64,000 nt of DNA from Callorhinchus milii. Its lineage: Eukaryota. The translations under genes were made by a program, and so were the position numbers. Under the pieces are notes generated by a model. It was not told the DNA's origin, made no database searches, and saw nothing but the letters and a program-made list of their open reading frames with translations. The stretch covers positions 137,578,001 through 137,642,000 of the forward strand of contig NW_024704742.1 in the NCBI RefSeq assembly GCF_018977255.1. The letters are read 5' to 3'. How positions within the stretch are numbered: the stretch's first letter is position 1; each line of letters opens with the position of its first letter. Shown here piece by piece: positions 10,856-62,162 of the stretch.

Positions 10856-10907
10856 ATGATGCTGGGAGCTGTGCTCTGTACACTGGTCCTGTCAACCTCT
10901 GCCTCCC
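10856..10907 (+). pseudogene. Gene A leader exon (signal peptide MMLGAVLCTLVLSTSAS), phase-1 donor
   Basis: ATG at 10856, 17 hydrophobic codons plus 1 nt, then GTACGT donor at 10908. Paralogous to 49217-49267 including flanks. Confidence 0.8.
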
Positions 10908-11718
10908 GTACGTACTTTCCAATCAGAAACCTGACTGGCTTTAATTACTGCTTTACCTTTTACTGCAATAATTACAGAGTTGTGTGTCAACTCGCAGAAA
11001 TAAGATACTACATCGTGTCTGAGCCAGTCCTTGGTCCTCCACTGGAGCCCTCTACTTTAACCCCATTCCCTGCTCTCTCCCTATCATATCTGTACACAGT
11101 CATTGACAGTTGGATCTCTTTTTTCCTCCTCCCCTTAACCCAACCTGCCAAAGGTCTACCAGGCAGTGTGGTCCTAGCTCAACACGACCTGGGAAAGCTT
11201 GCCTGACAATACTGTCAGTGGAAAGCTATTCGGTTATAACTAGTTAAACTCTAACATTTATCCCAACTCACATTCTGGCGTCCCTAATCTTTGGCTCTTG
11301 CCAACTTGTGCCTGATACTGTGTGTGATTTGGCGAACAGGGTACGCCCCTCTGTGGAGAGAGCGCTCAGCCCATTCCAGTCAAACAGAAATTTCCATGTA
11401 CAGGTGAAATTTTCAGCTGTTTGCTTTGAAGAATCTTGAGCACCGTGATGAGTTTCTTCTTGTATGAAACAACCAGCTGTCCACAAACAACGTGTCTGTG
11501 CTGGTCCTAGCTCTCACTGGAGCTCTCAATTCTAATCCAGTTTCTGGTGGATATTTTTCTCTACACGAACAGCCCAGTCTAACACCTCTCCACCCTCCCC
11601 CGACACCCTTTAATAGTCCTCTTCAAAGATCTGTCCAATTCCCTTTTATAGAATTGACAGACTTTGCCTTAATTCCGGTTTGTGCAGGGAATCCAACAAT
11701 CCCAACCCCTCTGTGCAG

Positions 11719-11997
11719 GGAACATCACCATCATGTGGAAGGAAGGCTGGACTAGTGCTGTGTATATTAAATATACAAATTATAGGCCGGATTCACAGGG
11801 AAAGTATCAAAATGTCATTGATGTAAATGAGGGAGAGCGATATCGAGTGATTGGGGATCCGAGGAGGAACGACGCCACAATAGAGATAAACCAACTGAGG
11901 GGAGAGGACAATAATAAGCTGTTGTCCTGTCGTGTGGAGCTCCAGGGTGAGGACGGAAAGTTTGAAACTGGCCCCAAAACACGTCTGATTGTTACAG
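11719..11997 (+). pseudogene. Gene A V1 exon, Siglec-15-like V-set, 5'-truncated (lacks A/B strands and first Cys)
   Basis: NITIMWKEGW...RYRVIGDPRRNDATIEI...LSCRVE...TRLIVT|G with GTGAG donor at 11998. Colinear with the 3' 279 nt of 57346-57735. Confidence 0.85.
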
Positions 11998-12627
11998 GTG
12001 AGGAATGATGGGAAGTGGGAATGAGACGTGACGTTCCTCACTGGGGCCGGAGTCAGTGGGAAGTGTCCCGTCCCAGGACGGGCAATAGAGAGGCAGTGTT
12101 CCCTGTGATGGACGGTGTGTAGCAGGGAGCTGACAGGTGACAGTGAGAGTCAATAAACAGTTACAACAACAAAACCTTCTCTTGTTTCCTCAACCCATCT
12201 TGACCACCAGAAGCTGGCTCTCTATTGGCTGGCGGTGGGAGGGTCGGTCAGTGATTGACAGAACGGATAAGCAATCGATTGGTAGAATTGATGAGATCAG
12301 CCCAATCAGAGCAGAGAGGAGGCACTGCTTCAGAGTGATTGGATGAGCAAAAACTGAGGGCCCTATTGTGGGCGGTGCCTGTGAGACATTGCATAGAGTT
12401 ACATAGAATATACAGTACAGAAACAGACCATTTGGCCCAACTGGTCTATGCTGGTGTTTATGCTCCATGTGAGCAGGACACAGGCTCAGAGAGGCTGAGT
12501 GAGGAGCACAGGCCTGAGGGAGATGGTGCCATGAAGACCAGGTAACATATCCAGGATTTCACAGTGTGTAACATGTACTCTGTCACACTGACTGCTCTGC
12601 ACTATTCCAATCCTGTTCCTGTCTCAG

Positions 12628-13020
12628 GTCATGAAGAGAAGCTCCGGTCAGTGACTGGTACCAAGGGAGGTGATGCCACACTGCCCTGCTCCTTCACCAT
12701 CCCCAACACATACCAGAATCGTGCCACAGTCACAGTGCTTTGGAGGAGAGGGAGGCCACATGGGCAGCTGGTGTTTAATTACACTCTTGGCCTCACCGCC
12801 CACACCAACTCCGGGGAGTCAGAGACAGTGAATGAAGGAAATCGCTACAAGCTGGTCAGGAATGTGGGAGATGGAGACGCTTCCCTGAAGATCAGGGGCC
12901 TGGAGTTAAACGACACCGGACGGTATTTCTGTCACGTACACGTCATGTTTATAAAGGAAAGATACCTGAGGTACCAGCAGGACCAGGTGACACAGGATAT
13001 GTTACGGCTGCAGGTTGCTG
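12628..13020 (+). pseudogene. Gene A V2 exon, V-set Ig domain (open frame, 131 codons)
   Basis: Acceptor cctgtctcAG and donor GTAAGA, phase 1-1. LPCSF...VLWRRG...DASLKI...DTGRYFCHVH gives canonical B-Cys, C-Trp and D-x-G-x-Y-x-C. Confidence 0.9.
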
Positions 13021-14076
13021 GTAAGAAATCTCTGTGGGACATGGAAATCTTCACCATCGCAACGTTAAGGACAAAGTTTGTCTCATTCCTTACCCTGTTC
13101 CTCATTTGTTAAAATTAGCACAAGAAAGCTCATTTTGAAATAGCAGAAACTTTAGTTTGTTACTGGGGGAAGGGTTTCTTACCACTTGTCTCATGTTAAG
13201 CCTGTAAGCCAAACCCATAATAAATAATACGATCCTAACCACAAAAGCAGAAGGAAACTTGCCAGACAAGCTGTGAGGTGTTTAATGACAAGCTGTGAGG
13301 TGTTTAATGACAAGCTGTGAGGTGTTTACAAGATCACAAGGTTAGTTGGGATGAAGAAGGTCCATCTGATCTCATCCCTCCAGAACACCCAACTATCCTC
13401 CCCCAATCAAAGCATCAAACTGCTTTGCAAAGGAGCCCAAGTATCCTGACCTACCACCGTTTCTGGCTACCTGTGCCCTGTGTGTGAAGAAAAACTTCCT
13501 GATGTCACCTACAAGGCCATTCACGGCCTCGCTCCCTCCTACCTCTCTGACCTACTATCCCCCTACCTTCCTGCCCGTACCCTCCGTTCCTCCGGGTCCG
13601 GTCTGCTCCACATCCCCCGCCCCAACCGCCCTACCATCGGTGGCCTTCAGCCTCTCAGCCCCGAGGCTCTGGAACTCTATCCCCCAGTGCCTTCTCCGCC
13701 TCCTCCCTTTCCTCCTTCAAGGCCGGTCTCAAGACCTTTCTCTTTGACCGAGCCTTCAGCTCCCCTCTCGACTCTCTACCCCCTCCTCGCTAACTCCCTT
13801 CCCTCCCCTCACCCCCTTCCCCCCCTCCTCGCTCCCTCCCTTCCCTTCCCTCCCCTCACCCTGACCATTTCCCCCCTGCCCGGGTCCTGACCCAATTGTA
13901 CAGCGCCTTGGGACGTCCTCCCGACGTGAAAGGCGCTCTATAAATGGAATCTTGTTGTTGTTGTGTTGTTGTTGATGGGTTAGAGTAGAGAGCTCCAGTG
14001 GGGAGTGAGCACCAGCACAGACACTATGGGGAAAGTTGTTTGGTTAGAATAACTCTGTGTTTCTTTATACCTGAAG

Positions 14077-14517
14077 CTCCGGCCGTCATCCTGAGTCTGT
14101 CGTGTGCACAGCTGAGGGGGAACCACCGGCCAACATCACATGGATTGACCCCGAGAATAACACGCTGCCCACACGCCAGTCACACACGTACCAGACAAGC
14201 ATCTAACCGTGGGGGAGATCCGGTGCCCGAGGCTGAGGGGAACTTACCGCTGTGTAGCTGAGAACACATAGGGCAGTGACGCCCGAGACATCCTCGCACC
14301 TGGACCACAGTGTGATGGGGACAGACAGAGTGATGGAGACAGACAGAGCAATGGGGACAGACAGAGTGATGGGGACAGACAGAATGATGGAGACAGACAG
14401 AGTGATGGGGACAGATACAATGATTGCAGCTTCATTATCATGATGCTGTGGCTGATGCCAGTAGCTAAATGTTTCTTTCTGTTGGTGATCGGGATCGTTC
14501 TAGTCAGAAAACCAAAG
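14077..14517 (+). pseudogene. Gene A C2-set plus transmembrane exon, frameshifted
   Basis: Paralog of 60994-61362 with about 22-nt and 13-nt deletions (shifted frame stops at 14259-14261) and an 18-bp tandem repeat in the stalk. TM remnant FIIMMLWLMPVAKCFFLLVIGIVL. Confidence 0.85.
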
Positions 14518-19498: not shown

Positions 19499-19499
19499 G

Positions 19500-20113: not shown

Positions 20114-20440
20114 GTGGAGTCCTGTAGCTCAGTGGTTAGAGCACTCGCTTTGGAAGCGAGAGACCTGAGTTCAATTCCAGGCAGAGGGCGAAACCTTGGG
20201 CAAGTTTCCTTACTCCACACAGAGCCTAATAATAATCCCTCCAAAACCAAAAACAATAATAAATTGGTCATTTTCAATCTACGACTGTTTGTGGGACATT
20301 GCTGTGCGCAATTGGCTGCCGCGTTCACCCACAAATATACAGTCAATTCACTTTACAGTGTGTTCTGTGAAGCGCTTTGGGACGTCCTCCCGACGTCAAA
20401 AGCGCTATATAAAATGCAAGGATTATTATTATTATTATTA
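20114..20440 (+). mobile_element. Young tRNA-derived SINE, same family as 975-1296
   Basis: tRNA-like head, conserved body, (ATT)n tail. Confidence 0.9.
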
Positions 20441-24949: not shown

Positions 24950-25312
24950 CTTTCTTCGCCCTCCAGATGAAGACTCCAACCGCGAGGAGAATGATCAGAA
25001 GGACTGTAGAGACACAGATGATGACCAAGAGTAATTCAAAGCTCAGCATCACCTCGTTGCCTTGGTAATAGACGGAGCGGGATGTGGTACCCAGCTGGTT
25101 AGTGACTGTGCAGGTATAGTTACCGGTGACCTGCGGATTGTGCGCCCAGCTCTCGATCCGGTAGTGGTCCAGTATGCGAGTGACGGAGGTCTGGTTGCCT
25201 CTGGGGTTGGTCCAAGTAATAGTGGGTCTAGGATTGCCCTCCGCGGTGCATGTCAGGATCTGGTGAGTCTGGTTCACTCTGTGCTGCGTCAGGTTCAGGA
25301 TCTCGGGCTGAC
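24950..25312 (-). CDS. Gene B C2-set plus uncharged transmembrane exon
   Basis: 363 nt, open, phase 1-1: LTCTAEGNPRPTITW...GNYTCTVTNQLG then LLLVIICVSTVLLIILLAVGVFIW-RAKK. Acceptor cttcctgtcccggtgccAG, donor GTGGGT. Confidence 0.9.
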
Positions 25313-40215: not shown

Positions 40216-40499
40216 GTATGATGGCCTACTACTGAAGGGGGTAAATTCAGAACAATTCTGTGGAAAGATTACTTCAATGAGAGAGTAGTAAACTAATGGA
40301 GCAGGCTCCCTAGGGGGACAGATGGTGGATTGTATGTAATACAATCGTAATTTGTTTCAAGAACAAATTGGATAGATTTCTGCTAGAAAATAATATCTTG
40401 GGATACATTGTTTGGGACACGACATGCCAAGCCACTGCCAGGATGGTGGAAGGCGAAGTAGATGGACCTTGGTCTTCTATCGCCTAACAAATTTCTATG

Positions 40500-46679: not shown

Positions 46680-47010
46680 CTAATAATAATAATAATAATA
46701 ATCCTTGCATTTGATATAGCGCTTTACACGTCTTCTAGACGTCCTAAAGTGCTTCACAGAATATACTGTAAAGTGAATTGACTGTATATTTGTGGGCGAA
46801 CGCGGCAGCCAATTGCACACAGCAATGTCCCACAAACAGTCGTGGATTGAAAATGACCAATTTGTTATTGTTTTTGGTTTTGGAGGGAATATTATTAGGC
46901 TCTGTGTGGAGTAAGGAAACTTGCCCAAGGTTTCGCCCTCTGCCTGGAATTGAACTCAAGTCTCTCACTTGCAAAGCGAGTGCTCTAACCACTGAGCTAC
47001 GGGACTCCAC
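46680..47010 (-). mobile_element. Young tRNA-derived SINE inserted in a CR1 fragment
   Basis: Near-identical to the other copies, with CR1 sequence on both sides. Confidence 0.9.
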
Positions 47011-48030: not shown

Positions 48031-49216
48031 AGCCTATTCCTCTCAATGTATTTATTGATGTATTATTATTATTGATGGGTTCGTGCCCATGTTGGGATAG
48101 TGCTCAGAGTCCAGGCTGATGCTCCAGCCCAGGGGAGCTGTACATCGTCAGAGTTGCCGTCCTTCAGATGAGATGTTAAACCAAGGACCTGTTTGGCCTG
48201 ACATTAAAGATCCCTCGACACTGATGGAAAAGAGAAGCGAGTTCCTCCCGGCTTCCTGCGCGACGATCAACCAGATTAATGGTTCATTCAACTTCTGGCT
48301 GTTTTTGTGATATCGCTGTGTGCAAACTGGTGCTGTGTTTGTCCATGAACACAGACACGATCGGTTCAAAACCTTTGAGACTTCCTAACATTACAGATTT
48401 TGTATCAAATACAGAACTGAACGGGTTATTAAAACATTTGTTCACTTCTTCAGTGAGAGAGTAGGAAACTTATGGAACGTTCTCTAGGGAGATGGTAGAA
48501 GTAAAGAGTATTGTTTGTTTTTAGAACAAAATTAGAAGTTCAGAGTAGTAAACTAATGGAAAAGCCTCCCTAGTGGAAACAGAAAATTTGTTTCGAGAAA
48601 ATAATAGAAAATAATATCTCAGGATACACTTTATAAAAATAATAATCCCTCGAAAACCAAAAACAATAATAAATTGATCATTTTCAATCTACGACTGTTT
48701 GTGGGACATTGCTGTGCGCAATTGGCTGCCGCGTTCGCCCACAAATATATAGTCAATTCACTTTACAGTGTGTTCTGTGAAGCGCTTTGGGACGTCCTCC
48801 CAACGTGAAAAGTGCTATATCAAATGCCAAGGATTATTATTATTATTATTTATAGATCTGAAATTATAGTTTAGGAAATGATATGTCAAGCGACTGCCAG
48901 GATGGTGGAAGGCGAACGAGATGGAGCTTTGTCTTCCTTCACCAGCAAATTCTTGTGTTCCCATGTAAACGTGGCCAATATAAAAAGGGTGTGAAATGTA
49001 ATAGAGCATTAAAAGTCACCCAGTTACTGTGACAGGGGGTGAGGGCGGGTTAGTGTTGGGGACAAACATAACAGAGCATCAGAACATAGCGGATGCGGAG
49101 GGTGGAGCTCTGGTGGTGACCACAGAACAAGAGGAGGAAGGAAGGAGAAGGGTGACCAGCTGTGCCAGTGCGAGGCAGACGTGCGCGGGGAAGGAGTGTG
49201 TCCTGAGTGAGGGACG

Positions 49217-49267
49217 ATGATGCTGGAGCTGTGCTCTGTACCCTGGTCCTGTCAGCCTCGGCCTTCC
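49217..49267 (+). CDS. Gene C leader exon with apparent 1-nt deletion relative to gene A
   Basis: ATGATGCTGGAGCT here versus ATGATGCTGGGAGCT in gene A, giving 51 nt instead of 52 before the same GTACGT donor. Confidence 0.75.
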
Positions 49268-50411
49268 GTACGTACTTTCCAATCAGAAACCTGACTGGCT
49301 TTAATTACTGCTTTACCTTTTACTGGAATAATTACAGTCATGTGATATCTCCTGCAAATAAGATTCCCGTCTCTAAACTGAACAGAACTGTGTTACTCAC
49401 TGAGCCCCACAGTGTAAGTGTTTGCCTCACCCTTTGGAACTCCATCCCACAGTCCCTTCCCCTCACCCCTCTCTTGATGTCCTCCCGACATGAAAGTGCT
49501 ATACAATTTGTTGTTGTTGAATCGGTGATCTTCCCATCCTGCGCAGAATACTGTCTGTGATGAGGTGAGCAGGATACGTCCCTCTGGGGACAAAGTGCAC
49601 ATCTCATTCCAGACACACAGACATTTCCAGATATAGGTGGAATTCTGCGTAGTTTGGTTTGAAGACTCTTCAGCGCAGTGATGAGTTTCCTCTGTTATCA
49701 GACACCCGGCTGATCGCAAACAAAGTGTCTGTGCCGGCGCTGGTTCTCACTGCAGCTCTGTATTCTACTGCAGTTTCTGACTGTTAAAATGATGGTATTT
49801 TTATAGCATGAAAACAGCCGCTCCGCCCGTTCATTCCATTTTGACAAGTTTTATTTTGTTCACATGATGCTCAGTCCCACCCTGTGTCTCGCTCACTCTC
49901 CCTCCCCCCAACACCATTTAATTTAATACACTTCGAACAACAATTCCCTTTTATGGACTTGACTGTGGATTCCTGTAGCTCAGTGGTTAGAGCACTCGCC
50001 TCGCAGGCAAGAGACTTGGGTTCGATTAGCATAAGTTGGGCAATTTTCCTCTCACCACACGCTTCTGTTTACTTAGCAGTAAGTAGGAACCTGGTTGTTA
50101 GTTGAATGGCGGTTCACATTTTCGTGGGGAATAATTCCTTCAAAAAAAATTATAAATATGTCGTTCAATCCACGACTGTTTGTGAGACACAGCAGCGCAA
50201 TTGGCTGCTGCGTTTCGCCCACAAAATATACTGTCAATTCACTTTACAGTGTATTCTATGATGCACTTTGAGACATCTCAAAGATGTGATCAAACCCTAT
50301 ATGAAATGCAAGACTCATTATTAATTGACGGACTTTGCCTCAACTCCGTCTGTGCAGAGGATTCCATAATCCCATCCTCTCTGTGTAAAGTGAAGTTTCT
50401 AACCCTCTCTA

Positions 50412-53185
50412 ACCGTGGCGGTGGTGTTGCCCTTATCTCAAGGACACCACTTGCCCTATCCCCCTACTCCACTGGCTCTTTCCCCTCCTTTGAGCACTTC
50501 ACCCTCTCCCACCCCTCCGATCGCCTCATCATCCTGGGCGACTTTAACCTACACTTCACACCCTCCTGCTCCATCTCCACAGACTTCTCTTCCCTGCTCT
50601 CCTCACTCAACCTCTCCTTACACATAAACTCCCCCACTCACAGTCACGGCCACCCACTCGATTTGGTGATCACCTGGGGCCTCAGTGTCTCGGATGTCAC
50701 TATTACCGACAAGGCCATCTCTGACCACTACTTCATCTCCTTCACCACCTCCACCCCCCTCCCCACCTCCACCAGACCCACCACCATCTTCTACCGCCCT
50801 TGGAAGAAATTACCCCCACAATCCCTAACCGATGCCTTGGAGTCCTCTGAACTCCTCTCCCTCTGGCCTTCAACCCTCACCGACCCCTCTTCTCCTCTCT
50901 CCCTCCTCCACAATACCCTCTCCTCCACACTCGATACTCTTGCCCCCATCACTTCCCGCACTGTCTCCTACTCCCGCTCCTCCCCCTGGTACACCACCCA
51001 CCTCCGCTCACTGAAAAGTCAGGTGCGGGCCGCTGAACGCACCTGTGTCAAATCTGGCCTAACGGTCCACCGACAAATCTGGCTAGACCTCCTCAAAATT
51101 TACCGCTCCACTCTAGCCTCGGCCAAGTCGTCCTTCTACTCCAGGATAATCCTGGAGGCGAAGAACAACCCCAGGCTACTGTTTTCCACCACAACCCGAC
51201 TCCTCCGTCCCCCCCGCCACGCCGCGCAGGTCATCTCCTCCAACCTTCACTGCGAGGAGATGCTGGATTTCCTTGAATCCAAGATCAAGGGAATCCGCTC
51301 CGCGGTCACTTCCCCTCCAACTTCCACCCACCACCCACCCCTTCCCTCCCACACTCCGACTCCTACCCATCCTCCCCTACACACCTTCGTACCCGTTTCC
51401 CCACCCTCTGTCACTGAACTCATCCTATCCCTAAAACCAACCACCTGCTCCCTTGACCCCATCCCCACTCCACTCCTTATCTCCCAGCTCCACTTTCTTG
51501 CCCCACATATCACTGACATCATAAACCTGTCCCTCTCCTCTGGCTCTGTCCCCATTCCATTAAAAACTGCCACCATCACGCCCACCCTGAAAAAACCCTC
51601 CCTTGATGCGTCGCAGCTATCAAGCTACCGGCCCATCTCCAACCTCCCCTTTCTCTCCAAGGTCTTGGAAAGAGTTGTCGCCTCCCAACTGCGCTCTTTC
51701 CTTTCCACCCATTCTCTTTTCGAACCCCTTCAGTCAGGTTTCCGTGCTGCCATAGCACAGAAACTGCCCTGGTCAAGGTCACCAATGATATCCTGACCAT
51801 CTGTGACCAGGGCTCCCTCTGTCTCCTCGTCCTCCTCGACCTATCGGCAGCATTCGATACGGTCGACCACGCTATCCTACTCCACCGCTTGTCCTCCCAC
51901 CTCAAACTTCAAGGCACTGTCCTTGAATGGTTTAGGTCGTACCTTTCTCACCGTCTTCACTTTGTCTCGACGAATGGCTTCTCCTCCACCCCCCGCACTG
52001 TCTCATGTGGTGTCCCTCAGGCTCTGTCCTCGGTCGCCTCCTCTTCACACTCTATATGCTCCCCCTGTGGTGACATCATCCGCAGACATGGAGTTAACTT
52101 CCACATGTATGCGGATGACACCCAACTCTACCTTTCCTCCTCTACTCTCAACTCCACGACCACCGATGTCCTGACAGCTGCCTGTCCGACATCGAGTCCT
52201 GGACGAGAGACAACTTTCTTCAGCTCAACGTGCGAAAAAACCGGAGGCCCTCCTGATTGGCTCACGTCAGCGCCTCCGCACCTCAGGCGCTGACACCATC
52301 AGCATCCAAGGCTGCACTCTCCACCTCTCAAAGCCAGTCAGGAACCTCGGCGTTTTGTTCGACCCTGAGCTGTCCTTTCTCCCTCACATCCGCACCACAA
52401 CTGGCACCGCCTTCCATCACCTCCGGAACATCGCCAGACTACGGCACTACCTCACCCCTCACGCGGCTGAAACCCTAGTTCACGCCTTTGTCACCTCAAG
52501 GCTGGACTACGGGAACTCTCTCCTCGTCGGCCTTCCCGCCACCTCCCTCCACACTGCAGGTCATTCAGAACTCTGCAGCTCGTGTACTGTCCCGCACCAG
52601 ACACCGCGACCACATCACTCCCACCCCTCGCTCACCTCCACTGGCTCCCCATCCCCAGAGGATTGATTTCAAGATCCTCATCCTCACCTACAAGGCCATT
52701 CACGGCCTTGCTCCCTCCTACCTCTCCAACCTACTATCCCCCTACCTACCTGCCCGTACCCTCCGTTCCTCTGGCTCTGGTCTGCTCCACGTCCCCCGCC
52801 CCAACCGCCCTACCATCGGTGGTCGGGCCTTCAGCCTCTCAGCCCCAGGCTCTGGAACTCCATCCCCCAGTGCCTTCGCCGCTTCCTCCCTCTCCTCCTT
52901 CAAGGCCGGTCTCAAAACCTTTCTCTTTGACCGTGCATTCAGCTCCCCTCTCGACTCTCTTCCCCCTCCTCGCTCCCTCCCTTCCCTCCCCTCACCCTGA
53001 CCATTTCCCCCCTCCTTGCTCCCCTTCCCTCCCTCACCCTGACCATTCCCCCCTCCTGCCCCCCCCTCCCCCTCACCCTGACCATTTCCCCCCTGCTCGG
53101 GTCATGACCCAACTGTGCAGCACCTTGGGACGTCCTCCTGACGTGAAAGGCGCTTTATAAATGGAATCTTGTTGTTGTTGTTGTT
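50412..53185 (+). mobile_element. L2-clade LINE, 5'-truncated (partial endonuclease plus RT, frameshifted)
   Basis: [40 protein letters not shown]. 3' stem-loop and (TTG)n tail. Confidence 0.9.
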
Positions 53186-53375
53186 AGTTAATTTTTTGTG
53201 ATGGTTTTTACATTTATTCCTCTTGTGACTGACTGGCTGATGAGAGGAAAATCTTTTGTGACTCTTTGAGGTTTAGCGACCGCTATCAGGTCACCCCTAA
53301 CCTTCTCAGCTTGCTAAAAAAGCCCCAACCTTTCAAATCTCCTTACAAACTTAAACCGCTAAACCCTGGGGACAT

Positions 53376-56300
53376 CAACAACAACAACAACAACAAGATT
53401 CCATTTATAGAGCGCCTTTCACGTCAGGAGGACGTCCAAGGCGCTGCACAGTTGGGTCATGACCCGAGCAGGGGGGAAATGGTCAGGGTGAGGGGAGGGA
53501 AGGGAGGGAGAGAGGAGGGGAGAAATGGTCAGGGTGAGGGGAGGGAAGGGAGGGAGCGAGGAGGAGGAAGAGAGTCGAGAGGGGAGCTGAAGGCACGGTC
53601 AAAGAGAAAGGTTTTGAGACCGGCCTTGAAGGAGGAAAGGGAGGAAGCAAGGCGAAGGCACTGGGGGATGGAGTTCCAGAGCCTCGGGGCTGAGAGGCTG
53701 AAGGCCCGACCACCGATAGTAGGGCGGTTGGGCGGGGGACGTGGAGCAGACCGGAGCCAGAGGAACGGAGGGTACGGGCAGGTAGGTAGGGGGATAGTAG
53801 GTTGGAGAGGTAGGAGGGAGCAAGGCCGTGAATGGCCTTGTAGGTGAGGATGAGGATCTTGAAATCAATCCTCTGGGGGATGGGGAGCCAGTGGAGGCGA
53901 GCGAGGGTGGGAGTGATGTGGTCCCGAAGCCTGGTGCGGGACAGTACACGAGCTGCAGAGTTCTGAATGACCTGCAGCTTGTGGAGGGAGGTGCCGGGAA
54001 GGCCGGCGAGGAGAGAGTTCCCATAGTCCAGCCTTGAGGTGACAAAGGCGTGAACCAGGGTTTCAGCAGCGTGAGGGGTGAGGTAGTGCCGTAATCTGGC
54101 GATATTCCGGAGGTGATGGAAGGCGGTGCCAGTTGTGGTGCGGATGTGAGGGAGAAAGGACAGCTCAGGGTCGAACAAAACGCCGAGGTTCCTGACTGGC
54201 TTTGAGAGGTGGAGAGTGCAGCCTTGGATGCTGATGGTGTCAGCGCCTGAGGTGCGGAGGCGCTGACGTGAGCCAATCAGGAGGGCCTCGGTTTTTCGCA
54301 CGTTGAGCTGAAGAAAGTTGTCTCTCGTCCAGGACTCGATGTCGGACAGGCAGGCTGTCAGGACATCGGTGGTCGTGGAGTTGAGAGTAGAGGAGGAAAG
54401 GTAGAGTTGGGTGTCATCCGCATACATGTGGAAGTTAACCCCATGTTTGCGGATGATGTCACCGAGGGGGAGCATATAGAGGGTGAAGAGGAGGGGACCG
54501 AGGACAGAGCCCTGAGGGACACCACATGAGACAGTACGGGGGGTGGAGGAGAAGCCATTCGTTGAGACGAAGTGAAGACGGTGGGAAAGGTAAGAGCTAA
54601 ACCATTCAAGGACAGTGCCTTGAAGGTTGAGGTGGGAGGACAAGCGGTGGAGTAGGATAGCGTGGTCGACCGTATCGAATGCTGCCGATAGGTCGAGGAG
54701 GACGAGGAGACAGAGGGAGCCCTGGTCACAGATAGTCAGGATATCATTGGTGACCTTGACCAGGGCAGTTTCTGTGCTATGAGCAGCACGGAAACCTGAC
54801 TGAAGGGGTTCAAAAAGAGAATGGGTGGAGAGGAAAGAGCGCAGTTGGGAGGCGACAACTCTTTCCAAGACCTTGGAGAGAAAGGGGAGGTTGGAGATGG
54901 GCCGGTAGCTTGATAGCTGCGACGCATCAAGGGAGGGTTTTTTCAGGGTGGGCGTGATGATGGCAGTTTTTAATGGAATGGGGACAGAGCCAGAGGAGAG
55001 GGACAGGTTTATGATGTCAGTGATGTGTGGGGCAAGAAAATGGAGCTGGGAGATAAGGAGTGGAGTGGGGATGGGTCAAGGGAGCAGGTGGTTGGTTTTA
55101 GGGATAGGATGAGTTCAGTGACAGAGGGTGGGGAAACGGGTACGAAGGTGTGTAGGGGAGGATGGGTAGGAGTCGGAGTGTGGGAGGGAAGGGGTGGGTG
55201 GAAGTTGGAGGGGAAGTGACCGCGGAGCGGATTCCCTTGATCTTGGATTCAAGGAAATCCAGCATCTCCTCGCAGTGAAGGTTGAAGGAGATGACCTGCG
55301 CGGGGTGGCGGGGGGGACGGAGGAGTCGGGTTGTGGTGGAAAACAGTAGCCTGGGGTTGTTCTTCGCCTCCAGGATTATCCTGGAGTAGAAGGACGACTT
55401 GGCCGAGGCTAGAGTGGAGCGGTAAATTTTGAGGAGGTCCAGCCAGATTTGTCGGTGGACCGTTAAGCCGGATTTGACAAAGGTGCGCTCAGCAGCCCGC
55501 ACCTGGCATTTCAGTGAGCGGAGGTGGGTGGTGTACCAGGGGAGGAGCGGGAGTAGGAGACAGTGCGGGAAGTGATGGGGCAAGAGTATCGAAGTGTGGA
55601 GGAGAGGATATTGTGGAGGAGGGAGAGAGGAGAAGAGGGGTCGGTGAGGGTTGAAGGCCAGAGGGAGAGGAGTTCAGAGGACTCCAAGGCATCGGTTAGG
55701 GATTGTGGGGGTAACTTCTTCCAAGGGCGGTAGAAGATGGTGGTGGGTCTGGTGGAGGTGGGGAGGGGGGTGGAGGTGGTGAAGAAGATGAAGTAGTGGT
55801 CGGAGATGGCCTTGTCGGTAATAGTGACATCCGAGACACTGAGGCCCCGGGTGATCACCAAATCGAGTGGGTGGCCGTGACTGTGAGTGGGGGAGTTTAT
55901 GGTGTAGGGGAAAGGTTGAGTGAGGAGAGCAGGGAAGAGAAGTCTGTGGAGATGGAGCAGGAGGGGTGAAGTGTAGGTTAAAGTCGCCCAGGATGATGAG
56001 GCGATCAGAGGAGAGGCAAAGAGATGTGAGGAGTGTTGAAATGTCAGAGATGAAGGTGGGAGAGGTTTAGGGGGCCGGTAGAGGAGGAGGATTTTAAGGG
56101 AGAGGAATGAGGGGTGGGAGAGGGTGAGGTGCTCGAAGGAGGGGAAAGAGCCAGAGGAGTAGGGGATAGGGCAAGTGGTGTCCTTGAGATAAGGGCAACA
56201 CCACCGCCACGGCGGTTGGGGCGGGGATGTGGTGGGAGGTGTAGCCGGGTGGCGTGGCCTCCGTGAGGGGGAAGGTGGCGCCTGGGGTGAGCCAGGTTTC

Positions 56301-57165
56301 TGTCAAGGCCATGATATCAACGTTCTCATCAAGGATGAGATCGTTGATGACCAGGGCCTTGTTGCAGAGGGAGCGGACATTTTGCAGTCCGATGTGGAGG
56401 GAGCGGTTGACAGAAGGGTGTGTGGGAGGGGAGGGCCTCCAGGTTGTGAGGCAGGGGTGGGGGGAATGGGGATGAGGGAGGAGAGGTTGACTCCCCGGGT
56501 CTGTGTCCGGGGTGGCTGGCGAGAGTGGTGGGGAATGGGGCAGTCGGTGTGGCTGCTGCTGGACAGCCAACGCCGAGTACCGCGGTGAGCCCGGCGGAGG
56601 ATCCCAGACTGGAACAGAGGGAGGTTGTGGGAGGGTCAAGTGGGGATAGAAGACGAGAGGGACGGAGAGAGAGGAGGAGAGAGCGGAGAGATGGAGAGGG
56701 GGGAGGGTTTGGGGGGAGAGAGGAGGGGGCGGGAGGAGGGGGTGAGGGGGCTCGGGTCAAAGCGGCAGCCATAGTGCGCACGCGGGGACCGGGAGCGAGC
56801 GGTCAGGTGGATGGCATTATCCCGCAGATTGGGGCATCGAACCCAACAGGACCATAGTGGGGGGGGGGGGGCGCGGAGGGTTTTTTTTTTTTTTTTTTTT
56901 TGTTTGTTTTGTGCGCGCGCACTCACCTGAAAACTAATCTATGACGTCGCAGTTCCCCCGCTCCGCCCCCACACCTCCCTCCACTGCCTAGCTGCACTCG
57001 CTCCGGCGTCGAGTTTAAGTACCTGGGTCAGTAGGCCCAGGCTCCTCCCCGCGCTGTCCTGCTGCCGCTCCCCGACTGGCTGCACTCGCTCCGGCGTCGA
57101 GTTTAAGTACCTGGGTCAGTAGGCCCAGGCTCCTCCCCGCGCTGTCCTGCTGCCGCTCCCCGACA
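53376..57165 (-). mobile_element. Near full-length L2-clade LINE (endonuclease plus RT), probably including its 5'UTR
   Basis: LQNVRSLCNK and ALTETWL (APE endonuclease). 461-aa RT ORF at 53483-54868 with YADD. (TTG)n tail. The 5' limit is uncertain. Confidence 0.85.
56991..57164. repeat. Perfect 2x direct repeat with 88-bp period, CpG-rich
   Basis: GCTGCACTCGCTCCGGCGTCGAG...GCCGCTCCCCGAC starts at both 56991 and 57079. Confidence 0.9.
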
Positions 57166-57345
57166 TCGCAGTGAATCTAAGCTGCAACTTTTCCATCACT
57201 TTTATATCCTTCTTACAGTGGGGGTCCCAATACTATCCACATTACTCCCCGCTGTGACCTAACCAAGCTCTTGTACAAGCTCAGTGTTACCTGTTTGCTT
57301 TTATGTTGTGTTCTGGTTCACATTACACCATGTGTGTCCTCACAG

Positions 57346-57735
57346 GGCTCAGTAGGAATGGCTGGACGATGGAGACCCCCGATACAGTGACCGGCAGGTT
57401 AGGGTCACCGGTCACCGTGTACTGCAAGTTCACTCCCCCTCACCCCAGATACACAGGGAACATCACCATCATGTGGAAGGAAGGCTGGACTGGTCCTGCG
57501 CATTTTAATTATACAAATTATGGGCCGGATTCACAGGGAAAGTATCAAAATGTTATTGATGTAAACGAGGGAGAGCGACATCGAGTGATTGGGAACCCGA
57601 GGAGGAACGACGCAACAATAGAGATAAACCAACTGAGGGGAGAGGACAATAATAAGCTGTTGTCCTGTTGTGTGGAGCTCCAGGGTGAGGACGGAAAGTT
57701 TGAAACTGGGCCCAGAACACGTCTGATTGTTACAG
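57346..57735 (+). CDS. Gene C V1 exon, Siglec-15-like V-set
   Basis: 390 nt, phase 1-1: WTMETPDTVTGRLGSPVTVYCKFTPPHPRYTGNITIMW...GNPRRND...LSCCVE. GNPRRND matches my recollection of human SIGLEC15. Confidence 0.9.
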
Positions 57736-59120
57736 GTGAGGAACGATGGGAAGTCCCCTGAGCACCTGGAGGCTGAGGCGGCCTCACTGTGGGGTTGTCT
57801 ATTTGCCGAGGCCCCTCACATGAGGACCTGGATTCAGCAGCTGGTGATCAGTAAGCCTGGGACGTGGCAATGGATCTCGAGAACATCAAGGTGGCTGGCA
57901 GGTCACAAACTGCCCTGTAAGATTCTCCCACCACAAAAAAGCCGGTGTAAAGCAGGGACTGGCTCCACAGTGACATACCAGGCCACAGGACGTCGGGCAG
58001 GAGTCAACCCTCTGTGGGGGTCTCTAGTCTGGTTCCTGAGCCAGGCGGTCGCAGTACTCCAGGGCACTGCTGATTTGGCATCAGCCTCATTGGCAGACCA
58101 GTCACTGGGCGCGACCATTCCCACTCAGCTCAATAACACCACAGATCTACACAAGCAGCAGGAAGCTTGCCACACAGTGCCGTCACTGGCCAACTGTGCT
58201 GTGGAGTCCTGTAGTGTAGTGGTTAGAGCACTCGCCTCACAAGCGAGAGGACTTGGGTTTGATTCCTGGGCAGGAAGAAACCTTGAGCAAGTTTCCTTGC
58301 TATACACGCCTCTGTTTACCTCGCAGTAAGTAGGAAGCCGGTAGTTTAGTCGATTGGTGGATCACCTCTGGGGGCAAAAATCTCTCCAAAAATAATTTTT
58401 TAAAAATTTGCTCTCTCAATCCATGACGGTTGTTGGAACGCTGCTGGCACAATTGACTGGTGTATTTCTCCCACAAGTTATACAGTCAATTCACTGGACA
58501 GTATATTTGGTGAAGCGCTTTGAGATGTCTCAATAGCAAGATATCAAATCCAGGTATTATTATGATTATTATTATGCTGCTTTCGCTGGTTGAACTCCAA
58601 ATTGCCCCAAACATAATACTCTCTGAATTACATACTCAGAGTGGATATATATGTGGAAGTCTCTCTCTGGTTTAGATACTCTTAACAACGGTGACAGATA
58701 TCTGTATGTATCAGGAAACCGACTGCCCCAAAACATGAGGAGGGATTTTCTTTACACCACCAAACCTCCATCTGAATTAGGTTGTTCAACAACAACAATA
58801 ACGTGCATTTATACAGCACTCCTCATGCAGGGCAGCATCCCAGAGCCTTCATAAGCATTGGGGGTCCTTCATCTGAGTAAATTCGCTGCAAAACAGTCAC
58901 TACACTTGCCAGTAATCATGTTAATGGTCCTATAAACATCCCAGGTTTTGTGTGTGAGACATTGTGTTGGACATAGGCTCATAGAGGGTGAGTGAGGAGC
59001 ACAGGCCTGAGGGAGATGGTGCCATGAAGAGCAGGTAACATATCCAGGATTTCACAGTGTGTAACATGTACTCTGTCACACTGACTGCTCTGCACTATTC
59101 CAATCCTGTTCCTGTCTCAG

Positions 59121-59504
59121 GTCCTGAAGAGAAGCTCCGGTCAGTGACTGGTACCAAGGGAGGTGATGCCACACTGCCCTGCTCCTTCACCATCCCCAAC
59201 ACATACCAGAATCGTGCCACAGTCACAGTGCTTTGGAGGAGAGGGAGTCCACATGGGCAGCTGGTGTTTAATTACACTCTTGGCCTCACCGCCCACACCA
59301 ACTCCAGGGAGTCAGAGACAGTGAATGAAGGAAATCGCTACAAGCTGGTCAGGAATGTGGGAGATGGAGACGCTTCCCTGAAGATCAGGGGCCTGGAGTT
59401 AAACGACACCGGACGGTATTTCTGTCACGTACACGTCATGTTTATAATGGAAGGATCCCATCAGGACCAGGTGACACAGGACATGTCACGGCTGCAGGTT
59501 GTTG
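59121..59504 (+). CDS. Gene C V2 exon, V-set Ig domain
   Basis: 384 nt, phase 1-1, near-identical to 12628-13020. YFCHVH, no F-strand Arg. Confidence 0.9.
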
Positions 59505-60548
59505 GTAAGAGATCTCTTGTCTCTGTGGGACATGGAAAAGGATGAATGAACAGGTCATCACTGACGCAATGTTACAGACGAGGTTTGTCTCATTCCTTAC
59601 CCTGTTTGTCATGTGTTAATTAGCACAAGAAACATGGTATCAGAAGGAGGAGACTTTAGTATGTTACTGGGGACAGGGTTTCTTCCCACTTGTCTCCTGT
59701 TAACCCTACAAGCTAAAGCCCAGGGTGATCCTCGCTGGACAAGCAGCGGGAAGCTTCCCAACAATAAATAATGTGTTTTTCACAAGTCCAGGATTGGTCT
59801 GAATGAAGAAGGTCCATCTGGTCTGATCCTTACAGAACACCACCCCCCCCCATCACAGTATCAACTGCTTTTTAAATGAGTCCCAGTGTCCTGGCCTCAG
59901 CCACCCTTCCTGGCCACCTGTTCCAATCCCTGATTACCCTCCGAGTAAAGCAAAACTTAAACACACGACCAGGTCCATCAGTGTCGGAATAAGACAGACT
60001 GGTTACCATCCCAGACACTGCACTGCCATCAGAACAGCAATATTTAGTTTCCCAACAGCACACGGTGTAGAAGTTACTGATTTTCTTCACGGATTTGATA
60101 AGAAATACGTCATTGCTCTCAGATACGTCAGGAGGGCACAGGGTCAGGGTTGTGATGGGCAAAATAAGAACAGATACCCGGAAGTACTTCTTTGTCCAGA
60201 AGGTAATTAATGACAGGAAGTTACCAGGAAGGGTGGTTGAGGCCGGACACTGTGGCTTATTACAGAAAGAGGTCGATGCTGTAACATCGACAGTGGGGTT
60301 GGGGGGGGATTGGGAACTTTGAGGTCAAATGGGCTGAAGCATTTTCTTCACACAAAACTCTCTTGAGATTTTATCAATTACATTGATACAATTGATACAA
60401 AATACATTTGCATAGCGTCTTTCCCAACAAAAGGACGTCCTGAGGCCCTGAGACTCGAATAGACTAAAATAGACTATATTAAAAAAATATTTTGTAAAGT
60501 GGTTGTAGCGGAACACTATGAACAACATGTCCAAGGAAAGAGAAGGGA

Positions 60549-60952
60549 TTAGAGTAGAGAACTCCAGTGGGGGAGCGAACCAGCACAGACACGATGGGTA
60601 GATAGCAGGGAATGGGGTTAGAGTAGAGAGCTCCAGTGGGGAGTGAGCACCAGCAGACACGATGGGAGAGAGCAGGGAATGTGGTTAGAGTAGAGAACTC
60701 CAGTGGGGGAGCGAACCAGCACAGACACGATGGGTAGATAGCAGGGAATGGGGTTAGAGTAGAGAGCTCCAGTGGGGGAGTGAACACCAGGACAGACACG
60801 ATGGGGAGAGAGCAGTGAATGGGGTTAGAGTAGAGAGCTCCAGTGGGGGAGTGAACACCAGGACAGACACGATGGGGAGAGAGCAGTGAATGGGGTTAGA
60901 GTAGAGAGCTCCAGTGGGGGAGTGAGCACCAGCACAGACACGATGGGGACAG
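60549..60952. repeat. About 70-bp minisatellite, 6 units, just upstream of the gene C C2 acceptor
   Basis: TTAGAGTAGAGAGCTCCAGTGGGGGAGTGAGCACCAGCACAGACACGATGGG...GAATGGGG repeated head-to-tail without spacers. Confidence 0.9.
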
Positions 60953-60993
60953 TTGTTTGGTTTGAATATCTCTGTGTTTCTTTATACCTGAAG

Positions 60994-61362
60994 CTCCGGC
61001 CGTCATCCTGAGTCTGTCCCTCGTGGCCGGAGGTGACATTGTGTGCTCGGCTGAGGGGGAACCACCGGCCAACATCACATGGATCGACCCTGAGAATAAC
61101 ACGCTGCCCATTAACACCAGCCACACGCCAGTCACACATGTACCGGACAAGCATCAAACCGTGGGGGAGATCCGGGGCCCGAGGCTGAGGGGAACTTACC
61201 GCTGTGTAGCTGAGAACACACAGGGCAGAGACACCCGAGACATCCTCGCACCTGGACCACAGAGTGATGGCAGCTTCATCACTGTGATGCTGTGGCTGAT
61301 GCCAGCAGCTAAATGTCTCTTTCTGTTGGTGATCGGGATCGTTCTCCTCTGTAAAACACAAG
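60994..61362 (+). CDS. Gene C C2-set plus Lys-containing transmembrane exon
   Basis: 369 nt, open, phase 1-1: IVCSAEGEPPANITW...GTYRCVAEN...FITVMLWLMPAAKCLFLLVIGIVLLC-KTQ|G. Donor GTTTGT. Confidence 0.9.
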
Positions 61363-62112
61363 GTTTGTCAATCCTTTGCTGTTTGTATCTTAAATACAAA
61401 ACCACTGAAAACCACTCCTGTGGTTATAATACATAACAGAACACAATACACAGTCACTATTTTATAGTAAAATCTCCTGAAACACTTTGAGATATCTTGA
61501 AATCATGATAAGGCGTTGTATCAAATGCAAGAATTATTATTATTCCAAAACAAGCACAGTCACTACACTTCACAGTAACAAACATCCTGTGAAGAGTATT
61601 CAGATGTTTAACCATGTGATGATGCGCTGCATCCAATGGAAGCATTATTATAACTAATGTGCTTTGTCAGATGTAGTGACTGTGTTTTTGTCAGCAAACG
61701 CTGCAGCCAGTCAGTGCGCAGCAAATCCCCCACACCCAGCAGTGATGTGGGCGACCAATTCATCTGGAGGATTGCTGGCCAGGACCCTCGGAGAAATCCC
61801 ACCTTGAGACCTACATGAATATGGGGAAGGTCTCGTCTCCTCATAGCCCACTCCTCTGGCTGCCCCTTTTGCTTGGCATCCAACCTTGCCACGATAAAGA
61901 GCTCTGAGACGCTGTCCTGTGTGAATACAAGTTGTTGTTGGATTTACCCCATTTGTGGACCATCCGAGATTTGAGGGCAAAACATCTCAAGGGCTGAGAT
62001 GAGGTGGAATTTTGCGATTCTGTTGAGCCTTTGAGAACATGGGAACCCGTGACTCCCAATAACAGTGTTTGTTTGGCTGAAACATGATCTCATTCTTTTT
62101 CTTCACTCATAG

Positions 62113-62162
62113 ATTCAAGACGTCTCCATCCTGAGGCCAAGAAAAGAAGGAGCTCTGTATAG
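62113..62162 (+). CDS. Gene C terminal exon (DSRRLHPEAKKRRSSV*)
   Basis: Acceptor ttctttttcttcactcatAG, phase 1, TAG at 62160-62162. Followed by a unique 3'UTR with AATAAA near 62833. Confidence 0.65.

Follow-up and report, generated by a model that had tools for sequence, protein, structure and literature searches.

A Probable Siglec-15-Related Gene Cluster with Two Kinds of Gene in Callorhinchus milii

Gene Content of the Locus

The stretch of DNA analysed here (the window; 64,000 nucleotides) contains three immunoglobulin (Ig) receptor loci, A, B and C, at the places where a sequence-only reading of the same DNA had put them (Table 1). The chondrichthyan origin guessed in that reading was correct, gene B being 100% identical to the Callorhinchus milii UniRef entry A0A4W3I0S2, "Sialic acid-binding Ig-like lectin 15". 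In all three genes the C2 domain and the TM share one exon, as had been proposed; however, the accompanying leader / V / C2+TM model does not hold for A and C, in which a second V exon had been overlooked and the arrangement is V1-V2-C2. The motifs GNPRRND, YFCRVE and CxAEGxPxPxxxW, read earlier as common to the three genes, are present, but each exact form occurs only once: the first in V1 of gene C (57591-57611), the second and third in gene B (27430-27447 and 25212-25250, respectively). The remaining copies are variants (GDPRRND, GNPREQD and RNVGDGD; LSCCVE, LSCRVE and YFCHVH; CSAEGEPPANITW). The TM Lys is found where it had been expected, in C (MLWLMPAAKCLFLLVIGIVLL) and in the broken exon of A, and the TM of B lacks it.

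Table 1. Positions of the Ig-receptor genes, their exons and neighboring features in the window.
Feature	Position	Strand	Sequence and remarks
Gene A	10856-14517	+	
Gene A, leader exon	10856-10907	+	MMLGAVLCTLVLSTSAS; phase-1 donor C/GTACGT; intact
Gene A, V1 remnant	11719-11997	+	GDPRRND and LSCRVE kept
Gene A, V2 exon	12628-13020	+	open, V-set (YFCHVH); 91% aa identity to C V2; in V2 clade
Gene A, C2+TM pseudo-exon	14077-14517	+	22-bp and 13-bp deletions; TAG at 14269-14271
Gene B	27752-24950	-	
Gene B, V-set exon	27363-27752	-	GNPREQD, YFCRVE; Arg directly after F-strand Cys
Gene B, C2-set + neutral TM exon	24950-25312	-	CTAEGNPRPTITW; ELLLVIICVSTVLLIILLAVGVFIW; donor AAAG/GTGGGT
Gene B, sole candidate leader	32962-33010	-	MTALRLILAALIVRNT; donor G/GTAAGT; low confidence, without homology support
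Left gap flank	36421-38589	-	98.5% identical to 3' part of ITIM paralogue LOC103188796
Assembly gap (25 N)	38836-38860	.	between B and C; not spanned by any exon of the three genes
Remnant D	38861-40216	+	copy of gene C 3' region; fourth, 3'-only remnant
Gene C	49217-62162	+	
Gene C, leader exon	49217-49267	+	ATGATGCTGG-AGC; one G fewer than gene A and the other assembly
Inverted LINE-type retroelement pair	50514-56011	.	gene C intron 1; reverse-transcriptase ORFs
Gene C, V1 exon	57346-57735	+	GNPRRND; LSCCVE, Cys replacing Siglec Arg
Gene C, V2 exon	59121-59504	+	RNVGDGD; YFCHVH
Gene C, C2-set + Lys-TM exon	60994-61362	+	CSAEGEPPANITW; MLWLMPAAKCLFLLVIGIVLL
Gene C, tail exon	62113-62162	+	DSRRLHPEAKKRRSSV; stop 62160-62162

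Gene A is a pseudogene, a dead copy of the activating form described below. Its leader shares 89% DNA identity with the leader region of gene C. The V1 exon has lost about 106 nt at its 5' end, including the B-strand Cys; homology to V1 of gene C begins abruptly at 11716, and tblastn spans only residues 28-126 of the latter. In addition to the lesions listed in Table 1, the C2+TM pseudo-exon carries a DRQS-repeat insertion of 108 bp and, past the TM, has lost 1 bp. There is no tail exon, and 3' homology is absent beyond 14523. Gene C is therefore the sole possible working Lys-TM member in the window.

Gene B is a single-V gene with a neutral TM, named SIGLEC15 in Ensembl and with orthologues in sharks and rays. 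Proteins resembling it carry the same name in Carcharodon, Cetorhinus, Amblyraja, Leucoraja and Pristiophorus, and together form one clade (support 100/99). A search for its leader and tail exons located neither, and shark leaders gave no match. In gene C, exons 2-5 are intact, with 397 open codons, the TM Lys, a 19-residue tail and AG/GT at all junctions. The tail exon matches the C-terminus of P0003 at 100%, and the AlphaFold2 model (pLDDT 83.6) contains three β-sandwich domains and a TM helix.

The assembly gap was judged by comparing its two flanks. The left flank corresponds to LOC103188796 of assembly GCA_018977255.1, covering the final ~0.7 kb of its annotated range and 1.4 kb downstream, and shows no homology to the last intron of gene C. 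The right flank is remnant D; its first base corresponds to the position 8 nt beyond the gene C stop codon, and it aligns to 62170-63673 in several blocks of 81-94% identity; coding exons of D are not present in the window. Since one flank resembles the 3' end of an ITIM paralogue and the other the 3' region of gene C, the two are not continuous. The window differs from the other C. milii assembly by ~1.3-1.5% and loses colinearity with it near the gap, meaning that local order and orientation are not secure.

Homology to Siglec-15

When the Ig pieces of B and C were searched against all PDB chains, human Siglec-15 (7ZOZ) was the top match for each V and C2TM piece, with a lead of at least seven orders of magnitude, and the likeness to Siglec-15 claimed from the sequence is thus real. 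For V+C2+TM of gene B the E-value was 5e-31 (runner-up 1e-9), for V1 of gene C 1.2e-12 (runner-up CD33, 1e-3) and for V2+C2TM of gene C 1.8e-16 (runner-up 4e-8). PILRA matched the last of these pieces only weakly (1.8e-4), and CD300 was absent from its PDB matches. Pfam detects V-set plus Ig_3/I-set domains. Human Siglec-15 also shares with the window genes the GNPRxND and YFCRVE-type motifs, the C2 motif CxAEGEPP, and a TM that directly follows C2.

In the V-domain tree, whose deep nodes rest on ~130 columns, gene B and the V1 domains form one chondrichthyan clade (99/95), nested within a larger one (96/86) to which the SIGLEC15 with a Lys TM of bony vertebrates also belongs. The V1 domains (98/93), the V2 domains (99/98) and the orthologues of B (100/99) each form a clade of their own. 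The remaining V domains of gnathostomes all together form the sister group of V2, a placement that a long-branch effect may explain. The C2 tree, with ~95 columns, is unresolved.

The SIGLEC15 of bony vertebrates has the mid-membrane Lys of gene C at an almost equal position in the TM. By contrast, gene B lacks a TM Lys, A and C add a V2 domain with His in place of the Arg, and V1 of gene C has Cys in this place. Mammalian Siglec-15 signals through DAP12. Gene B, with a Lys-free TM, should not signal in this way. The Arg that follows its F-strand Cys is retained, so that it could still bind sialic acid.

The V1-V2-C2 Family and its Two Forms

RefSeq contains models of V1-V2-C2 proteins, ~400 aa long and with 95-100% coverage of the gene C query, from Cetorhinus, Chiloscyllium, Pristis, Heterodontus, Rhincodon and Mobula, as well as from C. 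milii. Other chondrichthyan genomes have several members each. The activating form has a mid-membrane Lys, in the motif CLIPLxKFLLLLxTGIILF in elasmobranchs and MLWLMPAAKCLFLLVIGIVLL in C. milii, and its tail is 4-45 residues long (elasmobranchs 4-9, C. milii 19-45). The inhibitory form has a neutral TM and ITIM tails, with VIYSEV/VIYAVV (P0004), two copies of VIYSVV (P0026), ILYSSV (Heptranchias) or VIYATV (Heterodontus). Within a species the ectodomains of the activating and inhibitory forms are 89% (C. milii), 86% (Heptranchias) or 92% (Heterodontus) identical. The true ITIM partners in C. milii are the V1-V2-C2 paralogues LOC103188801 and LOC103188796, which have a neutral TM and ectodomains ~89% identical; their coding exons lie outside the window. 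In the other C. milii assembly both forms are found in tandem and in one orientation, in at least four tandem units.

The window is probably part of a Siglec-15-related gene cluster of C. milii with two distinct kinds of gene. As the sequence comparisons suggest, one kind would be gene B, a conserved chondrichthyan gene with one V and one C2 domain, which databases call SIGLEC15. The other would comprise A, C and remnant D, as members of a V1-V2-C2 family common to chimaera, sharks and rays, with gene C a nearly intact member of the activating form; this combined reading is the one that we consider likely. It bears out the earlier proposal of a Siglec-15-like birth-and-death multigene family, given the dead gene A, remnant D and further paralogues elsewhere in the genome, and departs from that proposal in the gene model and in the pairing of A and C with B. 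Automatic pipelines already list the V1-V2-C2 genes in databases under mixed names, and the literature search turned up no paper describing or characterizing members; this family of activating and inhibitory pairs thus appears, as far as we could find, to be undescribed.

The scaffold of the family is a Siglec-15-type V1, followed by a divergent V2, one C2 and the TM. If gene C is expressed, its TM Lys may pair with the Asp in an ITAM adaptor of the DAP12 type, through which ligand binding would become an activating signal. The ITIM paralogues, seeing the same or similar ligands, would counteract this signal via SHP-type phosphatases. Between paralogues, dS is 0.065-0.098 in V1 vs. 0-0.045 in V2 and C2TM, and dN/dS in V1 is ~1. 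These values are consistent with a family that evolves through tandem duplication, gene loss and homogenization of V2-C2, while V1 diverges.

Alternative Interpretations

A Siglec-15-derived family without sugar binding, in which V1 and V2 have ligands of protein or pathogen origin and sialic acid is not involved, is possible if rather doubtful. Directly after the F-strand Cys, gene C and P0004 have Cys instead of the Arg, P0006 has Trp, and each of the seven elasmobranch Lys-TM members read has Leu; V2 always has His at this site. For gene C itself, with Cys in V1 and His in V2, sialic-acid binding is therefore questionable. However, the Arg is retained in B, in P0003, in the V1 remnant of A and in those members of Heptranchias and Pristis that have an ITIM or a neutral TM, so that some of the family, at least, could still bind sialic acid.

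It is unlikely that the window holds no functional V1-V2-C2 copy, with gene C a recent pseudogene and B the only gene working here. In the assembled sequence, a G missing past ATGATGCTGG shifts the reading frame of the gene C leader, whose phase no longer matches that of V1, and the spliced CDS meets a stop after 31 codons. A 5.5-kb retroelement palindrome, with arms 96.5% identical, sits in intron 1, the neighboring copy A is certainly dead, and the V1 dN/dS given above points the same way. Against this, exons 2-5 are still open over 397 codons with every splice site canonical, and the missing base falls in a GGG run that is present in the matching, otherwise identical leader of the other assembly. 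NCBI models a 414-aa protein at the matching gene of that assembly (LOC103174418), and the same retroelement pair lies within this annotated gene.

The sequence-only reading had taken the three loci as V-C2 genes forming a paired set, Lys-TM A and C beside neutral-TM B, a model that we regard as very improbable. The distribution of the TM Lys fits it, and all three genes are Siglec-15-like and lie inside 50 kb. However, the ectodomains of B and C are only 35% identical, compared with 86-92% in true activating/inhibitory pairs, and B, for which no ITIM or tail was found, belongs to the separate single-V orthologue clade of sharks and rays; it was accordingly rejected as the partner of C. Moreover, A and C each carry an additional V domain, A is a pseudogene, and ITIM partners sharing the V1-V2-C2 ectodomain exist elsewhere. 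That the expansion in the window is an assembly artefact, with one or two genes multiplied by haplotigs or by mis-scaffolding of contigs, is hardly credible. In its favor, the gap has discontinuous flanks, and the window is not colinear around it with the chromosome-scale assembly, to which it is just 98.5-98.7% identical. Against it, A and C differ by 6-14% at the DNA level and by deletions private to one copy, an insertion and a nonsense codon, more than haplotypes would account for. The other assembly has its tandem units independently, and other chondrichthyan genomes also have several members.

Comparison with Other Receptor Systems

The V1-V2-C2 family resembles the paired Ig receptors, i.e., the CD33-related Siglecs (Siglec-5/14, 11/16), PILRA/B, KIR and LILR, in its tandem clusters with pseudogenes, in the near-identical ectodomains carried on charged-TM/short-tail or ITIM-tail forms, and in homogenized domains beside diverging ligand-binding domains. 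It differs from them in its scaffold of Siglec-15-type V1, V2 and C2, and from mammalian SIGLEC15 in being multi-copy and including inhibitory ITIM forms. Its presence throughout the chondrichthyans indicates that it is old.

Siglec-15 relatives that lack the Lys, as B does, include the teleost "siglec15, like" genes and genes named SIGLEC15 in paddlefish, coelacanth, caecilians and turtle. These have a V-C2 ectodomain, a neutral TM and tails with Tyr motifs (Conger, for example, has IIYADI/VCYAEV and Rhinatrema VTYAAV), and in the V tree, where the deep order is moderately supported, they fall outside the clade of B, V1 and Lys-TM SIGLEC15.

Two Siglec-15-like V domains followed by C2 are likewise found, as independent forms, in lungfish (XP_043934105), with a Lys TM as in gene C, and in characiform fishes. 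In lungfish the two V domains group most closely with one another, so that their duplication is recent and separate. In the characiform Metynnis, each V domain groups instead with a single-V gene of a different characiform, Salminus or Astyanax. The chondrichthyan V2 forms an old and separate clade.

Gene Content and Exon Organization

The window contains one conserved gene (B), one dead copy (A), one nearly intact copy (C) and one remnant (D). Six-frame scans, together with tblastn using the domains of the sequence-only reading, recover five V-type exons and three exons that each encode a C2-set domain plus the transmembrane (TM) segment (C2+TM). In the self-comparison of the window, locus A (10.7-14.5 kb) is paralogous block by block to locus C (49.0-62.2 kb), with DNA identities of 89% for the leader, 94% for the first V exon, 90% for the second and 87% for the C2+TM exon. 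Both genes therefore possess two V exons, V1 and V2, instead of the single one described by the sequence-only reading, and of its three Siglec-15-like Ig genes the loci stand while the one-V structure of A and C does not. Gene B, on the minus strand, has one V exon and one C2+TM exon. Exon limits of all three genes were set with AG/GT at all junctions. The three exact motifs that had been presented as shared each occur once in the window; the other copies are variants.

Exons of the three Ig-receptor loci, in window positions
Feature	Position	Strand
Gene A leader	10856-10907	+
Gene A V1 (remnant)	11719-11997	+
Gene A V2	12628-13020	+
Gene A C2+TM (broken)	14077-14517	+
Gene B single V	27752-27363	-
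Gene B C2+TM	25312-24950	-
Gene C leader	49217-49267	+
Gene C V1	57346-57735	+
Gene C V2	59121-59504	+
Gene C C2+TM	60994-61362	+
Gene C tail exon	62113-62162	+

Gene A is a pseudogene. The homology of its V1 exon to that of gene C begins abruptly at 11716, meaning that the first ~106 nt, including the B-strand Cys, are gone. The C2+TM exon carries a 22-bp deletion, a 13-bp deletion, a CAG-to-TAG change at 14269-14271, a 108-bp repeat insertion and a 1-bp deletion, and no tail exon was found, the 3' homology being absent beyond 14523. The dead exon retains the mid-TM Lys. The 108-bp expansion (14290-14400) is in frame and encodes DGDRQS repeats between C2 and TM; a C. milii paralogue with ITIMs, P0004, carries a related but shorter stalk, DGNRQSDGDGHSDGG.

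Gene C is nearly intact, with 397 open codons in exons 2-5. Its product is a type I membrane protein of V1-V2-C2 arrangement with a mid-membrane Lys and a 19-residue tail that lacks Tyr, the leader being out of frame as assembled. This leader reads ATGATGCTGG-AGC, and those of gene A, of two other units and of the matching position in the other, chromosome-scale assembly (GCA_018977255.1) read ATGATGCTGGGAGC; the spliced coding sequence as assembled meets a stop after 31 codons. The deficit is either a sequencing error or a null allele. The closest relative is C. milii LOC103174418 (P0003, 414 aa), which is 93% identical and whose last 16 residues match 62113-62159 exactly, fixing the tail exon. 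The AlphaFold2 model of gene C (12 relatives; pLDDT 83.6) displays three beta-sandwich domains and a TM helix. A Foldseek search of the three-domain model against the PDB returned generic multi-Ig matches only (OPCML, titin, IgLON5), with no family assignment.

Intron 1 of gene C holds two inverted LINE-type copies (50514-53057 and 53467-56011), whose arms are 96.5% identical and form a 5.5-kb near-palindrome. Reverse-transcriptase ORFs lie within them (minus-strand 53486-55075 matches RVT_1 at 6.7e-37). Since the same pair is present in the annotated LOC103174418 of the other assembly, it is not disabling for gene C. In intron 3, just 5' of the C2+TM exon, lies a 71-bp tandem repeat of 5.8 copies (60545-60949), an array also carried by paralogous units in the other assembly.

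Gene B, A Single-V Relative of Siglec-15

Pfam detects V-set and Ig_3/I-set domains, and the ectodomain of gene B consists of one V-set (Pfam V-set) and one C2-set domain (Ig_3/I-set). Both central exons are intact. Its sequence matches UniRef A0A4W3I0S2 (“Sialic acid-binding Ig-like lectin 15”, Callorhinchus milii) at 100% identity; that entry is a partial Ensembl model that reads through a splice donor at its end and has a repeat-derived first exon, seemingly from a repeat related to the ~320-bp element of the window. Neither a leader nor a tail exon was found for gene B. A scan for exons with a Met, a hydrophobic stretch and a donor site gave one weak leader candidate only (33010-32962), and the leaders and tails of shark, ray and sawshark proteins yielded, by tblastn, matches at chance level only. 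The best of these, “TFSPASK” at 21779, was rejected as an exon, as it lies within a repeat and is followed by a stop.

The mid-TM Lys is absent from gene B and from its shark and ray orthologues, where a basic residue, if present at all, lies at the outer edge of the TM. With the Arg of the ligand site and without this Lys, gene B would be a putative lectin whose signalling mode differs from that of the Lys-TM type.

Relationship to Siglec-15 and Other Ig Families

Siglec-15 is usually viewed as a single, conserved, DAP12-coupled lectin, and is a mammalian drug target in bone disease and cancer. In phmmer searches of all PDB chains, every piece finds its best match in human Siglec-15 (7ZOZ). 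Gene B (V+C2+TM) aligns with it end to end over residues 27-264 (E=5e-31; runner-up 1e-9), gene C V1 scores 1.2e-12 (next, CD33, 1e-3), and gene C V2 with C2+TM scores 1.8e-16 (next 4e-8). The sequence-only reading had named other families for comparison of the V domains, PILR, CD300-MDIR and NITR-DICP among them. In the comparison made, which covers PDB chains, Siglec-15 scores far better (1.8e-16, vs. 1.8e-4 for PILRA and 1.4e-3 for PILRB), and no CD300 or NITR chain appears at E<=0.01 with the V2 and C2+TM query or at E<=1 with the V1 query. We know of no solved structure of MDIR or DICP.

Matches of the gene B query among 1.84 billion representative proteins include shark and ray single-V proteins of the same kind (B-like), two hagfish relatives, and Lys-TM SIGLEC15 of mammals, birds, frog, coelacanth, lungfish and one characiform fish. 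They also include neutral-TM forms with a Tyr-bearing tail in teleosts (“siglec15, like”), paddlefish, coelacanth, caecilians and one turtle; a neutral-TM bowfin form has a tail without an ITIM-type motif. A maximum-likelihood tree of 66 V domains was rooted on hagfish, the sole non-Siglec-15 outgroup. The B-like sequences form one clade (100/99) and the V1 domains its sister (98/93), the two uniting at 99/95, and this chondrichthyan group is nested, together with Lys-TM SIGLEC15 from bony vertebrates, in a clade supported at 96/86. The V2 domains form a clade of their own (99/98) on a long branch. Because the B-like and V1 clades both include chimaera and elasmobranch sequences, the split between them predates the chimaera-elasmobranch divergence. 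The C2-domain tree does not resolve the deeper branching order, and its branch to B is long.

The one V plus one C2 of SIGLEC15 is shared by gene B, whereas A and C differ in their V1-V2-C2 arrangement; conversely, its mid-TM Lys is shared by gene C and the dead exon of gene A, but not by gene B. V-V-C2 architectures of Siglec-15 have also evolved beyond the cartilaginous fish, in a lungfish (P0038) and a characiform (P0061). The lungfish V domains are each other's closest relatives, indicating a recent and separate duplication, and the V domains of Metynnis each group with the single-V gene of another characiform.

The V1-V2-C2 Family and its Paired Members

The joined gene C query (V1-V2-C2+TM) finds full-length relatives of ~400 aa in C. 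milii and many sharks and rays, which supports the V1-V2-C2 architecture. Ensembl and NCBI already list these genes, but the automatically assigned names are mixed (SIGLEC15, SIGLEC12, CXADR-like, CD276-like, uncharacterized). No paper on Siglec-15 relatives in cartilaginous fish was found in full-text searches of the literature; the family, which the sequence-only reading had allowed might be annotated and characterized already, is thus annotated, with no characterizing paper found. In the skate members P0010, P0012, P0025 and P0023 the V2 unit is repeated after V1, for a total of three or four V domains, so the number of V2 domains varies within the family.

Two types of member are distinguished by the membrane segment and tail. 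Across eight elasmobranch species the membrane segment of the Lys-TM type carries CLIPLxKFLLLLxTGIILF; its C. milii counterpart is MLWLMPAAKCLFLLVIGIVLL or ILCLIPLVKFLTMLVTGIILV. Tails are 4-45 residues long, and gene C, P0003, P0006 and the Lys-TM members of those eight species all combine the charged TM with a short tail lacking Tyr. The second type has a neutral TM and ITIMs: VIYSEV and VIYAVV in P0004, VIYSVV twice in P0026 (also C. milii), ILYSSV in Heptranchias and VIYATV in Heterodontus. Within a species the ectodomains of the two types are 86-92% identical (P0004 vs. gene C, 89%). They are separate genes and not splice forms of one, since a single exon of the ITIM gene encodes both C2 and a neutral TM of its own. 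Within 40 kb of the other assembly, Lys-type and ITIM-type units alternate in the same orientation, the stretch holding a 480-aa gene, unit 1 (Lys-TM), LOC103188796 (ITIM) and LOC103174418 (Lys-TM); in the window, A, D and C also lie on one strand. The P0026 locus (MU249832.1:137747800-137788011) stops ~100 bp short of the position matching the gene C V1 exon.

The V1-V2-C2 family therefore matches known paired activating/inhibitory Ig families in its charged-TM, short-tailed member, ITIM near-twin and tandem clustering. The pairing proposed from the sequence holds for this family, and fails for A and C with B: genes B and C share only 35% ectodomain identity, no ITIM or neutral-TM exon of the family was found within the window, and its ITIM-type gene is represented solely by a 3'-end fragment left of the gap. 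That interpretation is accordingly supported in part.

In SIGLEC15 the mid-TM Lys couples to DAP12/DAP10, and sialic acid of the sialyl-Tn type is bound. By analogy with the established behaviour of Siglec-15, Siglec-14/16, activating KIR and PILRB, the Lys in the TM of gene C would pair with the Asp in the TM of an ITAM adaptor of the DAP12 type, delivering an activating signal that the ITIM twins would oppose by recruiting SHP phosphatases. A search with human TYROBP is uninformative on sharks, the best 120 of 228 matches all being mammalian, and a search of the literature on DAP12 in elephant shark or cartilaginous fish found nothing relevant.

The Sialic Acid Site and its Variants

The Arg directly after the F-strand Cys corresponds to R143 of human Siglec-15, which is required for sialic acid binding. 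The motif reads YFCRVE in gene B, LSCRVE in the V1 remnant of gene A, LSCCVE in gene C V1 and YFCHVH in the V2 of both A and C. Elasmobranch ITIM and neutral-TM members mostly retain the V1 Arg (Heptranchias, Pristis; P0017, P0020).

Residue at the site matching R143 of human Siglec-15
Residue	Members
Arg	B; P0003; gene A V1 remnant; Heptranchias ITIM form; Pristis neutral-TM form; skate members
Cys	Gene C; P0004
Trp	P0006
Gln	Hemitrygon
Leu	7/7 elasmobranch Lys-TM members read (P0011, P0013, P0014, P0016, P0018, P0019, P0024)
His	Every V2

Members bearing the Arg may bind sialic acid, and gene C, with its Cys, probably lacks canonical binding. Comparison of gene C with two paralogous units gives dS values of 0.065-0.098 for V1 and 0-0.045 for V2 and C2+TM, with dN/dS of ~1.0-1.15 for V1 and 0.45-0.84 for C2+TM, all from small counts. 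The pattern fits a homogenized V2-C2 and a V1 that would be older, and less constrained or diversifying. In elasmobranchs, V1 domains of the Lys and ITIM types fall into different subclades, and V2 and C2 group by species.

Paired Ig receptors are themselves known; new here is their construction on a Siglec-15 scaffold with an added V2. Taken together, these features may tentatively be read as an undescribed paired family that predates the chimaera/shark split and combines a Siglec-15 V with V2, its inhibitory member sensing self sialic acid and its activating counterparts having moved off sialic acid, a reading that we hold at somewhat below even chances. If true, the logic of the CD33-related Siglec pairs arose independently in a lineage in which a 2014 survey recorded no Fc-receptor or KIR/LILR-type genes (PMC4016189). 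The oldest living jawed-vertebrate lineage differs from the usual picture of Siglec-15, having a single-V gene without Lys and the Lys-TM design in a multi-copy V1-V2-C2 family with ITIM twins. To our knowledge, few innate paired receptors are known from sharks, rays and chimaeras; the family provides concrete candidates. The Arg, Cys, Leu and Trp variants form a natural series at the sialic acid site. It becomes possible to test how Siglec signalling modes originated, as well as the self-versus-decoy model of paired receptors. For the window alone, the result is more modest.

Assembly Reliability and Repeats

The window has a G+C content of 49%, two single N's and one gap of 25 N's at 38836-38860, which lies clear of every exon of A, B and C. 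The analysis of this gap is a comparison of its flanks. To the right, 38861-40216 (remnant D) copies the gene C 3' region 62170-63673 in several blocks of 81-94% identity, its first base aligning 8 nt beyond the gene C stop codon. To the left, 2.3 kb show no homology to the last intron of gene C, and the minus strand is 98.5% identical to the final 0.7 kb of the ITIM paralogue's annotated range plus 1.4 kb downstream in the chromosome-scale assembly. From these homologies each flank looks like the 3' end of a family gene, the body of which would be expected inside the gap. This would mean a gap far longer than its 25 N's, spanning two genes in head-to-head orientation; otherwise the join is an error. 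Around the gap, the window loses colinearity with the other assembly, and the join is unreliable. The reading of A and C as haplotigs is rejected, given their divergence and private lesions.

Window positions 36421-57164 are 98.5-98.7% identical, and not identical, to the P0026 locus, with rearrangement near the gap; the block matching 36421-38589 is inverted there and directly adjoins the gene C upstream region. A ~320-bp repeat occurs at 974-1296, 20114-20436, 29641-29963, 31146-31422, 46684-47010 and 48638-48864 (92-97% identical). ARAGORN calls tRNA-like structures within two copies (20119-20189 and 29888-29958), suggestive of a SINE of tRNA origin. A C-rich minisatellite with a 14-bp unit, CCCCCTGAGCCCCT, extends over 43049-44738 (~123 copies, G+C ~0.6), between 480-bp direct repeats at 41948-42428 and 45302-45781 that are 99.2% identical.
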